DNA of 64,000 nucleotides from Piromyces finnis finn (GCA_002104945.1 MCFH01000101.1:1-64000); one strand, 5' to 3'. Counted from the stretch's first letter, positions 34,553 through 58,610 are shown. Numbers and translations are program-made. Notes: generated by a model from the sequence alone, not told the origin.

Positions 34553-35201
34553 TGTCATGAATATTAGTGGATTCATGATTATTTATTTAATTAGTGTTCT
34601 ATTCGTTTAATTAATTAGAAATATTTTATTATAAAACATAATTAAATAATATTTTAAGAGATATTAATTAATTATAATTGTTAAGATTTTATATTTATTA
34701 AAATTAAAATTTGAATTAATATCTCTTTATTCATTTGATTAAGAAGGAAATTAAAACTAAATTATAAAATAATCATTCCTTCTACAAATGATTGATAACA
34801 TGACTTTTATAATTATTAAATTTAACACGAGTGAAAAGTCATATATAATTAATATATAATTAATTTATAGAATAGTTAATTAATATAAATAATTAGTCAT
34901 GTATTAAATTTAAAATGTATTCCTTAATATTAGAGATAGTATAAATACTCGAGAAAATTCCTATCATTAGGGATTTCGAGAGTTCATTACATTTAATATT
35001 TACTCTAATTATAATAATATTTAATAAATAAAAATTTTTCTTTAAATAAAATTTTTTCTTTAAATAAAAATTTATTAATAAATAAAGTTAATTAATAAAA
35101 TGTTATTTATTTAAAATATTTATTTATTCATTTATTTATTAAATTAATAAACTTAGGGTAAATATGTGTATTCCGACCTAACTGAAGTGAAATCGGTAAC
35201 A
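34553..35201. mobile_element. D-family LTR ending 66 bp upstream of tRNA-Glu; flanks do not form a TSD
   Basis: TGTCATGAATATTAGTGG..AAATCGGTAACA; left GGCAA, right ATACA. Confidence 0.85.
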
Positions 35202-35267
35202 ATACATTGTAGTTAAGAATTTGCATATATAATTAAAATTATATATTTAGATTACATATGAAGATTA

Positions 35268-35339
35268 TCCGCATTGGTCCAGTGGCTAGGATTCCACGCT
35301 TTCACCGTGGCGGCCGGGGTTCGATTCCCCGATGCGGAA
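35268..35339 (+). tRNA. tRNA-Glu(TTC)
   Basis: TCCGCAT/ATGCGGA, CCACG-CTTTCAC-CGTGG, GGTTCGATTCC. Confidence 0.96.
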
Positions 35340-35349
35340 ATCTTTAAAA

Positions 35350-35423
35350 GCTCGCGTAGCCTAATTGGATAGGGCGTCAGACTTCTAATCTGAAGATTGC
35401 GGGTTCGAGTCCCGCCGTGAGTG
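35350..35423 (+). tRNA. tRNA-Arg(TCT), intronless, 10 nt downstream of tRNA-Glu
   Basis: GCTCGCG/CGTGAGT, TCAGA-CTTCTAA-TCTGA, GGTTCGAGTCC. Confidence 0.96.
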
Positions 35424-36301
35424 AAAAAAAATTATTTTATAGAATATTCATTAAGATAAAATAGGTAGTTTTATTTACTTATCATATCATATATGCATTA
35501 CATTTCTTATTTTATAAATATATAATTCATTTATTCATTTGCCAAAATGAATTTTCTATATTATATTAACTTTAGAAGAATAAGTTATTAGGAATAGCAA
35601 TTAAATAGTTAAATAACAAAAGGTTTTATTTTTTGTTTAATAATTTCTTTTTTATTTTAATATTTTAAATGAAATTTACGGTAGATTTGATTAATACTAT
35701 AAGAGCATTATTATTAAATTTTATATAAATAATTAATCTTTTAAAAAGACGTAGGTTTCAATTCAACTTAACTCAGCTCAACTATTATATATCTATCTAT
35801 TATTTTTGAATTACTAAAGTTAAGTAATTTAAAATTTTATTCTAATTATTGGAGAGAATAATTTATAAAACTTATAAAAAGGGAAACTATTTTTGAATAT
35901 TAAATCATTAAAGCATTAATAAAATTATAAAATACTGCATTTTATGAGTTTGTAGAGTGTATAGTTGATTTTAATATTTTAATATTAATATATATTATTC
36001 TACTATAGTTTAATTTATTATCAGCGTCAAATCCCAAAATATATTAACATGGTGTTTTTGTATTCTTAATGAGGTATAATTACTTCTTATTATGTGGAAA
36101 TAATTCTATATAATTTTATACTCAAGGATTTATAATTTATGCCAAATTATAAAATTAAACTTAATGTTTTCTTGGAAATATCAAAGACTAGAATTATTTT
36201 CAAATATTCTTATTTCTTAAGACAAATAGATAATAGATGGAAGCATTTCTATTAAATGCTTTATAAATTCTAATAGATATATCATATATATTATACAAAT
36301 T

Positions 36302-36620
36302 TAATATATAATACAATAATTACCATATTAAAATATAAGCTCTGCTATTAATTTAATATATAATACAATAATTACCATATTAAAATATAAGCTCTGCTAT
36401 TAATTTAATATATAATACAATAATTACCATATTAAAATATAAGCTCTGCTATTAATTTAATATATAATACAATAATTACCATATTAAAATATAAGCTCTG
36501 CTATTAATTTAATATATAATACAATAATTACCATATTAAAATATAAGCTCTGCTATTAATTTAATATATAATACAATAATTACCATATTAAAATATAAGC
36601 TCTGCTATTAATTTAATATA
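36302..36620. repeat. 52-bp minisatellite, 6 copies
   Basis: GCTCTGCT recurs at 36339, 36391, 36443, 36495, 36547 and 36599. Confidence 0.93.
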
Positions 36621-54630: not shown

Positions 54631-54639
54631 GTCTTTGAA

Positions 54640-54713
54640 GCTCGCGTAGCCTAATTGGATAGGGCGTCAGACTTCTAATCTGAAGATTGCGGGTTCGAGT
54701 CCCGCCGTGAGTG
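54640..54713 (+). tRNA. tRNA-Arg(TCT), 9 nt downstream of tRNA-Glu
   Basis: Identical to 35350-35423. Confidence 0.96.
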
Positions 54714-56822
54714 AGGATTTTATTTTATAGAATGTTCATTTAAGATAGTAGTTTTATTTAATTATCATATATACATTTCTTATTTTATAAATATATAATT
54801 CGTTTATTTAAATAAATAATTTTATAATTTTTTTTTCTAGTATAGTAATAAAATAATAAAATTGAAAAATCATAATAATGAATAATAGTATAGTATAGTA
54901 TAGTATAGTATAGTATAGTATAGTATAGTATAGTATAGTATAGTATAGTATAGTATAGTATAATTTATTATGTGGAATTGTGTTTTCTGTTCTAATAAAG
55001 AATAAATAAAAAACTAAAACAATATTTAAGAAAAATGAATTATATATTAAATCATTAATTTTTTTTATATTTTATATTTTTATATATTTATATATTTGTA
55101 TTTTTATATTTTTATATTTTTATATCTTTATATTTTTATATCTTTATATTTTTATATCTTTATATTTTTATATTTTTATATCTTTATATTTTTATACTTT
55201 GATACTTTAATATGTGATATTAAAAAATTGCTTTTATGTATAAATATTAAATAACTAAAAATTACACATATTTTGACTTGAATTAGATATAATTATAATA
55301 GTGGTAGAAAAACAGAAAACCCTTTTATAAATTTTATTATTTTGTTTTGTAATAATTAAAAAAAAGTTAAGAAAAAAAATATTTTTGTTTCTTGTATCTA
55401 GCATTCTATTAATAAATTTAAACTTAAAAGAAATAGTAATAATTAAAAATTTTATATTAATGCTATTTAAACAATAATAAATAAAATTGAAAATATTTAT
55501 ATATGAATAAACTTGAAATTTATTATGTAGTATACTTTACATTGCTAAGTTAATAACATAGAATATATTATATTCATTTTATTAAGCACAACACACTATG
55601 AAAGATCTATTTTAAAAATACTACTTTTTGTTAATTTTTCAAATTGATTTTTTCATTATTTCTTCATAAAGTATTATGAATAACTGATTTAAACATTAAA
55701 AATAACAAAATATTTACATGCTTTCATATAAATTTTTTAAATTTAAATTTTAAAAATGCCTAAAAAAAAAAAAAAAAAAGACACTACTTTATGAAAATAT
55801 ATAAATTTTAATTTTAAAAATAAACACATTTTTAATTTAAATTATTATTTATAATTAATTAAAGGAACATTCGTTGTTACATACAGCAAGTAGTAATAAA
55901 AAGTAAAGTAATGGAAATTTTTGATTTGAAGTAAATTACTTTTAATTTTGGTTTTATAAAAACTTACTCTTAATTAAATCAGTTATGATTTTATATTGGT
56001 AAATTTAATTACTATTTTATAGCAAATTATATAATCAAAGTTAGTTTAATCATTAAAAATTTATAGTTTTTTCTTATTAGTCATTCATTCATTCATTAAT
56101 TTATTTATTTATTTATTTATTTTGGTAAAAATGTTTTTAATAAACACTCACTATTTTTTCGTATTTTATCATTATCAATTAAGTGATTAGTCATTATATA
56201 GCTTATAATATGTTTTTAAATATAATGTTTAATTATTATTTATATATTATATGGAATCCTTTATTTCATTTTCATTAAATCTTGATAATGCATATAATAA
56301 AAGAAATAAACTCAGTTTTTAATTTTTTGTAAAGATTATATAATTATAATTTTAATTATATAACTAGTAAATATTCATACATATATTAAAAATCATAATA
56401 AAAAACATTTTAAAATTAATATTTATTCTATAAATATAATGTATATCTTTGAGATTATTTAATAATAAGTATTAATGATTAAGTAATGATTTTACATTTT
56501 AATAAAAGATTATTTCATAAATTCATTAAATACGATTCGTGGAGTAATTAAATAAAAAATTGTTTAAATAAAAACAAAATTTTGATAAATATTTAAATTT
56601 ATGGAACAAGTAAATTTATTCAAAATAACTATAAAATATTTTATTTTTTACTTTCACTTTATTTTAAATTACTTTAACATATATAATGTAGTATTAAAAA
56701 TAGGGATATATTCAAATTGGATCAAGAAATACATATTTGATTTGTTTTAATTAAGCTTTATTGCTCTGGTTTATTAAATAATTATAATTTTTCCAATTAG
56801 CAATAATACTATTAATTAAAAA

Positions 56823-56894
56823 TGGAGAGTGAGTGATTCGAACACCCAACCTTCCGCTCTGGAGGCGGACGCGCTACCGTTGCGCCAACCCTCC
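56823..56894 (-). tRNA. tRNA-Trp(CCA)
   Basis: Identical to 37457-37528. Confidence 0.96.
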
Positions 56895-56903
56895 TACTTG
56901 TTC

Positions 56904-58610
56904 TCTCAAATAAATAATTAAATTTATAAATTACAAATTAATAATAATAACAATAATGTCATGAATATTAGTGGATTCATGATAATTTATTTAAATAATG
57001 TTTTATACATTTAATTAATTAGGAGTAATAATTTTATAAAACATTATTAAACAATATTTTTAGAGATTTCTATTAATTATAATTATTAAGATTTTATATT
57101 TATTAAAGTTTAAATAATATCTCTTTGTTCATTTGATGTGGAAGGAAATTTAAATAAATGAAATAGTTAGTCATTCCTCCTCAAATGATTGAAATGGTTT
57201 AAGCAATTAAATAAAGGCAAGTCATAAGCTTAAAGTCATTATATAAATATTTAATATATTTTAATTTATAGAATAGTTAATTATATTAAAATTGAAATCA
57301 TGTATTTTATAATTAATGTAACTTATTAAATAGATTAATCATTTATTAATTGATTTAAAAATTATAAATACTCGAAATTGATTCAACAATTGAACTTTTC
57401 GAGAAATCATTAAGTTTGATAACTCTACTTAGTGAATTAATAAAATATTTGGTTAATAAGATGTATTAATAAATTTATTAATAAATAAAAGTATTATAAT
57501 AATACATAATTTATATTAAATTAATAAGTAGGGTTAGGGCATTCTGACCTAACTTACCTAAATTCATCTTAGATCCTTAACAAATAATAATATAATAATA
57601 ATAATAATAATAATAATAATAATAATAATAATAATAATAATAATAATAATAATAATAATAATAATAATAATAATATAATAATAATAATAATAATAATAAA
57701 ATAAAAAGTTTAATAATAATAATAATAATAATAATAATAATAATAATAAAATAAAAAGTTTAATAATAATAATAATAATAATAATAATAATAATAAAATA
57801 AAAAGTTTAATAATAATAATAATAATAATAATAATAATAATTAAAACAAAGATAAAAATTAAAATATTTAACATGTATAAAATTATTAAATTAAAAATTA
57901 TAAATGTAAACTTTTTGTTTATTTAATTGTTTATTTATTTTTAAATTAAATAGTTTATATTTGTTTATAGTTATACTTTAAAATAATAATTTTGTATAAA
58001 TAGTAATAGAAACATTCATTTTAAAAGATGTTCCTAATAATCCGTTAAAATTAGATAATAATATTAAATTTATTAAAATAATATTTATAATTATGTTCAT
58101 ATACATACGAGATGTATTAATAATAAAATATATATATATATTTAATAATACGAGAGCTATTAAATATCAAAATTTATAATTAAATAAATTTATTTTATAA
58201 AACTAACTAATACTTGAAAATGAACAAGTATAAAAACATTTATTTTTATTTTCTTTATTTTTATTTATTAAATATTTTTTTTAGATACAGATATTATCAC
58301 TTTCTATATTTCATTTATAGAATTAAGATAATATTCTTACCGTATCATTTCTAATAAAGAATAAAATTTATAAATAATCAATCAATATAAACTCTGACTT
58401 AAAAATTTTATTATAAATCTAATATTAAATTAAAATAGCAAACAATTAAGATAATGTAAATATAAATATTTAATTAAATTTTAAAAATGTAAAATATAAA
58501 CAATTTTTGTTTATAAACAAACTTAAATGTAATTAAATAGTATAAATTGAAATAGAAAACATTATTTTAAAAACTGTTACTAATTAGCCAGGAAAATTAG
58601 AATATTTTAA
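56904..58610 (+). repeat. Near-identical paralog of 3180-5968 (lacking F1): H fragment, D LTR 56957-57582 (TSD AATAA), H 3' part, truncated I
   Basis: Line-by-line match apart from microsatellite length and a few substitutions. Confidence 0.92.

Follow-up and report, generated by a model that had tools for sequence, protein, structure and literature searches.

A 62–68 nucleotide upstream insertion register at tRNA genes used by Ty3/gypsy retrotransposons of Piromyces finnis

The Piromyces finnis finn sequence MCFH01000101.1:1-64000 (GCA_002104945.1; G000:C4:1-64000 in the present numbering), a stretch of 64,000 nucleotides hereafter called the window, carries tRNA genes bordered by long terminal repeats (LTRs) of retrotransposons. 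Analysis of the window and of the genome to which it belongs (56,455,805 bp in 232 contigs) showed that retrotransposons of one Ty3/gypsy clade, the F clade, integrate at a position fixed by the tRNA gene, 62–68 nt (mode 66–67) upstream of the mature 5′ base, a conclusion that is held with great confidence. These distal insertions are accompanied by a 5-bp target-site duplication, are independent of the local sequence, and in most cases point the 5′ end of the element toward the tRNA. The fuller statement, that this fixed position is reached by way of a tether on the upstream side of TFIIIB, is considered reasonably probable. Judged by their sequences, the autonomous families F, F2 (with K LTRs) and F3 (with C LTRs) together with the D LTRs form a single clade and are not independent inventions.

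Results

Boundary positions upstream of tRNA genes

Candidate tRNA genes were collected with an RF00005 search, and 63 of ~2,900 candidates were scored. The sequence set consisted of 18 ten-kb regions, 40 upstream pieces of 300 bp, the window and 30 D loci, and collapsing near-identical upstream flanks gave 63 tRNA loci without another tRNA immediately upstream. The test was blind to element family: the 160-nt upstream regions were compared by BLAST with all the collected sequence, and the tRNA-side end of homology was scored when at least four hits supported it. Boundaries were found at 9–19 nt (37) and at 62–68 nt (19, mode 66–67), with 13 at 20–61 nt and seven at 69–140 nt. The 62–68 nt interval held 19 of the 39 non-proximal boundaries as against 2.3 expected over 121 positions (Poisson P = 5e-12). 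There was no further peak within 160 bp upstream, i.e., none one nucleosome farther out. The original prediction, made from the window, had proposed a second, narrow distal register of a distinct mode. The two-peak histogram across the 63 non-redundant loci is in agreement with this, the distal register standing apart from the Ty3-like one at 10–19 nt, and the distal peak is present beyond the window.

Of the 19 distal boundaries, 18 were recognized in a scan for terminal motifs as ends of F, D, C or K, and the remaining one, at locus L043, has a K-like terminus as judged by eye. Within the 160 nt upstream of the sampled loci, the same scan found none of these termini at 9–19 nt. The sole F, D, C or K terminus outside 62–68 nt lies at 97 nt and was displaced by a later insertion. 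Locus L077, missed by ARAGORN and added by hand, has an F terminus at 66 nt, and another F pol lies ~1.8 kb from its tRNA. The isotypes with distal insertions were Glu, Arg, Met, Trp, Ala, Gly and Thr, with Val added by reconstruction. A cluster at 26–28 nt was considered as a third register and rejected, as it was made up of sequence variation at the end of the P4 LTR and one LTR inside a tRNA-Glu (L033). The latter LTR (L033 ~7470-7500) lies within the tRNA-Glu body, 28 nt before tRNA-Arg, and truncates the first gene of a Glu-Arg pair; in L053, the tRNA-Glu is internally deleted.

Independence and orientation of the distal insertions

Perfect 5-bp target-site duplications in different flanks were found for 15 D solo LTRs, comprising at least 11 distinct duplication sequences with no consensus. 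At 11 non-redundant D loci, the flank aligned to a tRNA-upstream segment starting at -64 to -69. Most of the remaining D copies directly adjoin the terminus of another distal-family LTR, as expected if one site is used repeatedly. Many D copies are more than 1.5 kb from any tRNA, and in the traced cases later full-length proximal elements lie in between. That the distal events are independent and do not descend from one duplicated ancestral insertion, as had been argued from the window, is supported by these differing duplications and flanks.

Distal insertions were present in unique upstream DNA (tRNA-Glu, tRNA-Trp and tRNA-Met of the window and tRNA-Ala of L024) and also inside the tRNA-proximal 50–55 bp of the proximal LTRs P1/P2, P3, P4, P5, P6, P7 and P10, the ends of which sit 11–22 nt from the tRNA. 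As the distance is constant in unique DNA and in at least seven proximal LTR families, the site is measured from the tRNA gene and not from the local sequence. Identical bases of a host LTR were reused by different distal families, namely, ATTAT in P6 by F and C, TGGTT in P1 by K and D, and TATCA in P4 by C and D.

One particular end of the LTR faced the tRNA at 15 of the 19 loci found from the tRNA side. This was the 5′ end for F (6/8), C (5/5) and K (1/2) and the TGTCATG end for D (2/3), and a survey centered on D gave the TGTCATG end toward the tRNA at 10 of 11 loci. Pooled over ~29 events, the orientation bias had a binomial P of ~5e-4. The sense strand was directly established for F, K and C. 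An attempt to assign the strand from terminal similarity failed, K LTRs being antisense to what their likeness to the D and F 5′ ends had implied; terminal similarity gives no strand because the LTR termini are inverted repeats.

The register was also observed outside this genome. On the JGI contig 3300021285/Ga0214509_1000272, an element whose pol is 64% identical to that of F lies with its 5′ end toward a tRNA-Val and starts (TGTCAAGG) 64 nt away from it. Comparison of this contig with the present genome gave no close match beyond the tRNA itself (93–95% identity), and it therefore comes from a different organism. Three other external contigs (L094–L096) had no tRNA beside the element, and in another, L100, gag is preceded by ~540 bp of sequence. 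The assembly of L097 (6348-17539; JGI metagenome contig) shows the external F-clade element in tandem, as LTR-internal-LTR-internal repeated every 5,676 bp at 99.98% identity. Database relatives at 63–86% identity came from gut and metagenome assemblies and one Orpinomyces protein set, and none had a Pfam chromodomain; many relatives at 41–50% identity, the closest ones beyond the clade, carry PF00385.

Distal insertions in the window

The genome is strongly AT-rich, and the window has a G+C content of 11–37% in 2-kb blocks. Thirteen tRNA genes were located by ARAGORN, with coordinates on which Infernal agrees. Retroelement domains were found in five of the seven window open reading frames (ORFs) of at least 150 amino acids (aa), and a Pfam scan of six window ORFs matched only retroelement families; the window is a graveyard of tRNA genes and LTRs. 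Four distances proposed by the original prediction, 66 nt for D to Glu, 66 nt for C3 to Arg, 68 nt for K2 to Met and 62 nt for D to Trp, were all exact when read from the sequence.

A D-family LTR with TG...CA ends (34553-35201, plus strand) has its 3′ end 66 nt before tRNA-Glu(TTC) (35268-35339, plus strand), which is the first gene of a Glu-Arg pair and the target of this insertion. As the 3′ LTR of a short non-coding element, it lacks a target-site duplication. The left end of that element (33893-34552) is an inverted partial D LTR (positions 443-649, 90% identity), and C140 (L005) carries the same structure. C62:10129-13777 (L001) and C32:21687-25335 (L002) are identical to the window (compared at 35202-35268) through D and 60 nt of spacer, and then bear a P1/P2-family LTR ~8 nt upstream of tRNA-Glu that the window is without. 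This difference reflects either a recent polymorphic insertion or haplotypes assembled separately.

C3, a full-length C-family LTR belonging to the autonomous family F3 (47052-48052, minus strand), lies 66 nt from its target, tRNA-Arg(TCT) (48119-48192, plus strand), with its 5′ terminus TGTGAAGATATT pointing toward the gene. It was inserted within the terminal 44 bp of a P3-type LTR remnant whose end is at -22. Upstream of tRNA-Met(CAT) (50861-50933, plus strand) stands a three-layer stack, read in order as reversed F, CACAT, C2, CACAT, K2, CACAT, 63 nt and then the tRNA. The oldest layer is a reversed F-family LTR fragment (49283-49668, minus strand) and the middle layer is C2, an internally deleted C LTR (49674-50140, minus strand). 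The youngest is the K2 LTR of the autonomous family F2 (50144-50792, minus strand, sense), which lies 68 nt from the tRNA and has CACAT as its target-site duplication. Since each of the three is bordered by CACAT, three different LTRs entered one 5-bp site in succession. The layering suggested earlier for the reversed F is hence real, and the predicted distance of C2 to tRNA-Met before K2 arrived, 66 nt, was recovered.

At tRNA-Trp(CCA) (56823-56894, minus strand), a D-family LTR (56957-57582, plus strand) has its TGTCATG end toward the gene, 62 nt beyond the tRNA 5′ end at 56894. Another D LTR (4369-4994, plus strand) lies in a duplicate of 56913-58613; the two D copies share this one 95%-identical duplicated segment and therefore represent one ancestral event. 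F1, an F-family solo LTR of 1131 bp (3236-4366, plus strand), has the target-site duplication AATGT, which takes 2 nt from the end of the Trp-type spacer and 3 nt from the start of the D copy at 4369. A straddling duplication of this kind implies 65 nt, the value that had been reconstructed on the Trp-type flank.

At tRNA-Val(TAC) (22978-23052, plus strand), a solo LTR of the proximal family P1/P2 (22466-22963, minus strand) lies 14 nt from the gene and has displaced C1 and D outward. With this LTR and one duplication removed, C1, a deletion variant of the C LTR (21837-22406, minus strand), falls ~68 nt from the tRNA, so that its predicted distal position stood while the value of 67 nt shifted slightly. 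The reversed D LTR, the older layer of this stack (21214-21831, minus strand), does abut C1 with a gap of 5 nt; a distance of 69 nt to tRNA-Val had been claimed for it. In total, the window holds eight or nine independent distal events at six loci. The six loci are as originally counted, and the earlier figure was about ten events; T, which had been taken for an insertion, is not one (see below).

Tight same-strand tRNA pairs, 7–10 bp apart, were observed at 8338-8503 (Ser-Met), 35268-35423 (Glu-Arg) and 54559-54713 (Gly-Thr) and in L031 (7422-7573), and are probably dicistronic units. Insertions at such pairs occur only at the upstream member. P1 (TGTAAGAAATATTTGTGGCC) and P2 (...AAACCTTTTACA) are labels for opposite ends of a single proximal LTR, ~500 bp long, as seen in the window at 22466-22963 and 25109-25601 and in L043 at 1558-2011. 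The tRNA-Arg/Met/Glu-Arg/Trp module of the window (48119-56894), together with its LTRs, recurs on C230 (L047/L048), C184 (L034/L035) and C107 (L055), and in the C230 copy the spacings match the window within 3 bp. Such recurring modules are segmental duplicates or assembly redundancy and need to be collapsed before events are counted.

Element families of the F clade

F is an autonomous Ty3/gypsy element with open gag (303 aa, Retrotrans_gag) and pol (1201 aa) frames. The pol domains are RVP, RVT_1, RT_RNaseH, Integrase_H2C2, rve and SH3_Tf2-1, i.e., in the order protease, reverse transcriptase (RT), RNaseH, integrase (IN). Full-length F elements in L044 and L031 have LTR pairs that are 100 and 99.9% identical, and in both the 5′ LTR ends exactly 67 nt from the tRNA. 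At least 14 full-length copies of F pol are free of internal stops and 99–100% identical to the query. In L044, ~920 bp (786-1706) without an ORF of at least 120 aa lie between the F pol stop and the 3′ LTR; the corresponding interval in F3/C is ~430 bp.

F2 has open frames of 1251 aa flanked by K LTRs, and F3 has open frames of 1274 aa flanked by C 5′ termini 6.4 kb apart at no fewer than five loci; the pol of each is 65–67% identical to that of F. The 5′ LTR end of a full-length F3/C element was predicted, from coordinates only, at C176:246463, 66 nt before tRNA-Arg at C176:246530, and a C terminus matching this predicted end was seen upstream of that gene. Autonomous parents were thus found for the F, K and C LTRs, whereas none was found for the D LTRs. 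C185:214250-218200 was examined as the interior of a C element and rejected, since it consists of stacked solo LTRs and contains no ORF.

All of F, D, K and C have TG...CA ends, and their 5′ terminal ~20 nt are alike. In no fewer than 35 C copies of the genome, the same interval of ~510–525 bp stands between the two parts that make up C2. The sequence named T (~47427-47912) is therefore the middle of a full 1-kb C LTR, C1 and C2 are internal-deletion variants of it, and the claimed insertion of T 67 nt from tRNA-Arg is not an event. The identity of 65–67% among the F, F2 and F3 pol proteins together with the shared termini indicates that what appeared as four families is one clade with one inherited habit. 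The earlier description of four or more families using the register accordingly holds for LTR sequences, several of which are distinct, but not for independent lineages, and T is not a family.

The proximal families stand apart from this group. P1 (L032) has an open gag-pol frame of 1801 aa, lies 11 nt from tRNA-Glu, and is 48.6% identical to F over RT-IN; P3 and P9 are 33% identical to F pol. A relative without the integrase tail (L036, 3344-9471; 47% identical to F) is not beside a tRNA gene. This element is young, with LTRs 99.8% identical, a target-site duplication of ATCAT, and an open gag-pol frame of 1348 aa ending right after the SH3 domain; its surroundings are G+C-rich.

Integrase C-terminus

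F pol matched the Ty3 Gag-Pol of structure 7Q5B with E = 1.6e-136, aligned from RT to the end of the integrase C-terminal domain (CTD). The last ~70 residues of F pol are kept across the clade (alignment A1) and have no match in Pfam. A Pfam scan of the integrase tails at E values up to 10 returned no chromodomain, and neither F nor P1 nor the L036 element contains PF00385. For the C-terminal 199 residues of F pol, AlphaFold gave a model with a mean predicted local distance difference test (pLDDT) score of 76. In a fold search with this model, the best PDB match was the Ty3 integrase in the TFIIIB-bound strand-transfer complex (7Q5B, E = 1.8e-4). The tail alone superposed on chromodomains with a root-mean-square deviation of 1.5–1.7 Å (MPP8 and CDYL2, 26–30% identity). 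The model thus points to a Ty3-like C-terminus for the F integrase, in which an SH3-like CTD precedes a degenerate chromodomain fold.

Discussion

Comparison with known tRNA-gene-targeting elements

Ty3-type elements insert 1–10 bp from the Pol III (RNA polymerase III) start, within 33 bp of the mature tRNA 5′ end (PMC5911963, Table 1). For LTR elements in general, the described positions are up to 33 bp upstream of tRNA genes, downstream of them, or within the broad Ty1 window, and positions 40–64 bp upstream are held only by the non-LTR elements TRE5 and NLTR-B (PMC5911963, PMC5006619). In the reviews examined, a register at 62–68 nt is undescribed for integrase-bearing elements; targeting of tRNA genes by a Ty3/gypsy integrase as such is already known. 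A full-text literature search on Neocallimastigomycota retrotransposons and tRNA genes returned nothing relevant.

The F clade resembles Ty3, as well as Tj1, Tyl3/Tyl6/Ylt1 and DGLT-A, in its gypsy gene order, its TG...CA LTRs and its 5-bp duplication. It further shares with Ty3 a sequence-independent, position-specific insertion upstream of tRNA genes and, on the modeled structure, an SH3-like CTD with a degenerate chromodomain. Ty3-like insertion at 10–19 nt is practiced in the same genome by P1, P3, P9 and more families. Unlike the Ty3 group, the F clade inserts at 62–68 nt and was never proximal in the sampled loci.

Dictyostelium TRE5-A and yeast Ty1, which had been named as comparators at the outset, proved apt. 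TRE5-A of Dictyostelium discoideum inserts 40–54 bp and NLTR-B of Polysphondylium pallidum 39–64 bp upstream; TRE5 is oriented opposite to the tRNA, and its ORF1 protein binds TFIIIB (PMC5911963). The F clade is similar in its distal and fairly narrow upstream position, and most of its copies are, like TRE5, opposite in transcription to the tRNA (F 6/8, C 5/5). The 62–68 nt register overlaps the NLTR-B range at its outer edge only and falls beyond that of TRE5. TRE5 and NLTR-B are non-LTR elements that use target-primed reverse transcription, have neither integrase nor LTRs, and insert ~15 bp nearer the gene, whereas the F clade has LTRs, an integrase and a 5-bp staggered cut.

Like the F clade, Ty1, Ty2 and Ty4 use an integrase to insert upstream of Pol III genes, outside the TFIIIB footprint. 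These elements use a window of ~1 kb with a nucleosomal periodicity of ~80 bp (PMC5911963), and their integrase binds AC40/AC19. The F clade differs from these copia elements in its single 7-bp window and gypsy gene order. With the chromoviruses Tf1, MAGGY and Skipper-1 it appears to share a chromodomain fold kept in the tail, but it has no Pfam-detectable chromodomain and targets tRNA genes instead of heterochromatin or Pol II promoters.

Proposed mechanism and points against it

The proximal mode of 14 nt fits a start site ~10–12 nt upstream of the mature end, as in yeast. With a leader of this length, the distal duplication would be centered ~52–54 bp upstream of the start. TFIIIB in the Ty3 system covers -15 to -32 from the start site and the cut is made 2–3 bp upstream of the start, with the CTD contacting TBP and the vestigial chromodomain contacting Brf1 (PMC8632968). 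A distal center beyond the upstream edge of TFIIIB and ~52 bp from the proximal site is what favors a tether on the upstream side of this factor, for which the chances are put at close to even. The Ty3-like integrase C-terminus, as modeled, and the 7-bp precision likewise favor a tether on a DNA-bound factor. In such a scheme, the CTD-chromodomain module of the integrase would link the intasome to the pre-initiation complex of Pol III, with TFIIIB as the likeliest contact. Docking would occur at the upstream side of TFIIIB and not at the side of the start site, with the cut made ~52 bp, or five helical turns, upstream of the proximal cut. As observed, new copies re-enter one 5-bp site and build up stacks, and later proximal insertions (10–19 nt) of other families displace the distal copies outward. 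More tentatively, and with somewhat less than an even chance, the Ty3-like module may dock on the opposite, upstream (Bdp1/TBP) face of TFIIIB, a second and roughly mirror-image geometry between integrase and TFIIIB, five helical turns from the Ty3 site. This geometry would have evolved in one fungal lineage beside proximal relatives, P1 among them, and a few changes in the tail might suffice to switch between about -14 and about -66.

Several points weigh against this account. P1 inserts at 10–17 nt despite an integrase tail homologous to that of F (36% identity over the last 137–150 residues), and domain architecture alone therefore does not explain the shift of 52 bp. The distances to TFIIIB would hold to the extent that the ~10–12 nt leader known from yeast applies here. 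The predicted chromodomain fold of the tail could also fit reading of the first upstream nucleosome. The sense of D was deduced from a polypurine-like flank only, in a clade whose LTR termini are inverted repeats. The sample of tRNA genes is biased, with 63–67 loci that are mainly Arg-TCT, Gly-TCC, Thr-TGT and neighbors. The 5S rRNA genes, used as a gauge of the start site, gave five hits, all in the rDNA repeat with identical upstream sequence and no insertions. These 5S genes (L090–L093; C8, C188, C153) were found only in a repeat of 8,534 bp, presumably the rDNA unit, and tandem ATGACATATT-like 10-mers lie ~95–160 nt upstream of them.

Alternative explanations

The likeness of the tail to chromodomains in fold opens another route to a fixed position: a tail of this fold might read a positioned nucleosome upstream of the nucleosome-free tRNA gene, with integration at the tRNA-proximal edge of that nucleosome. 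The F tail does superpose on the histone-binding chromodomains of MPP8 and CDYL2, the more distant relatives at 41–50% identity have a Pfam-detectable chromodomain, and Ty1 offers a precedent for nucleosome-guided insertion upstream of tRNA genes (PMC3545840). Yet the 7-bp window, kept over eight or more unrelated upstream sequences, is narrower than the Ty1 pattern of ~1 kb with an 80-bp period, and the second peak that would lie one nucleosome outward is absent within 160 bp. Pfam detects no chromodomain in the F tail itself, and the aromatic-cage positions, read by eye in alignment A1, appear not to be conserved. Nucleosome-edge targeting is hence regarded as unlikely. Doubtful to a greater degree is a tether of rigid geometry, reaching -64, to another component of the Pol III machinery, be it TFIIIC or a subunit of Pol III, the latter comparable to the binding of AC40 by the integrase of Ty1. 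Subunit tethering is established for Ty1 (PMC7459421, PMC10050235), and DGLT-A attains the Ty3 position without detected TFIIIB contact (PMC6101501). Known tethering to a Pol III subunit, however, yields a broad window and not a fixed site, and the C-terminus of the F integrase is like that of Ty3 and unlike that of Ty1.

It might also be argued that there is no targeting at all and that the peak is due to segmental duplication of few ancestral loci, to some sequence motif that the host LTRs carry, or to harmless insertions having been preferentially kept by selection. Duplication is certainly at work, as the Arg-Met-Glu-Arg-Trp module with its LTRs recurs on C230, C184, C107, C32 and C62, and two of the window D copies are duplicates of each other. 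After near-identical flanks were collapsed, however, 19–20 events with different flanks remained, at seven or more isotypes, and the 15 D solo LTRs with perfect duplications, of at least 11 distinct sequences, lie in different flanks. The reuse of identical positions within a host LTR by two families (P6 by F and C; P1 by K and D) and the same spacing for an element in another organism also speak against it, and selection cannot explain the near-emptiness of positions 69–140. The absence of targeting is therefore largely refuted and is judged very improbable.

Implications

Targeting of Pol III genes is a textbook case of "safe-harbor" integration. Three geometries were previously on record, namely, the start site (Ty3, DGLT-A), the broad nucleosomal window (Ty1) and, for non-LTR elements only, a position ~50 bp upstream (TRE5). 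Here, an integrase-bearing clade uses a fixed site ~64 bp upstream, and start-site families in the same genome are related to it and have an integrase tail homologous to its own. F and P1, 49% identical overall and 36% in the tail, form a natural pair that could reveal the residues setting the distance from tether to cut. This has a bearing on the way host factors position intasomes of the retroviral type, and also on the design of integrases with programmable offsets. The stacked, time-ordered insertions and the many intact, near-identical copies suggest that this gut fungus, which has been little studied, is a live system for the study of retrotransposon-host dynamics.

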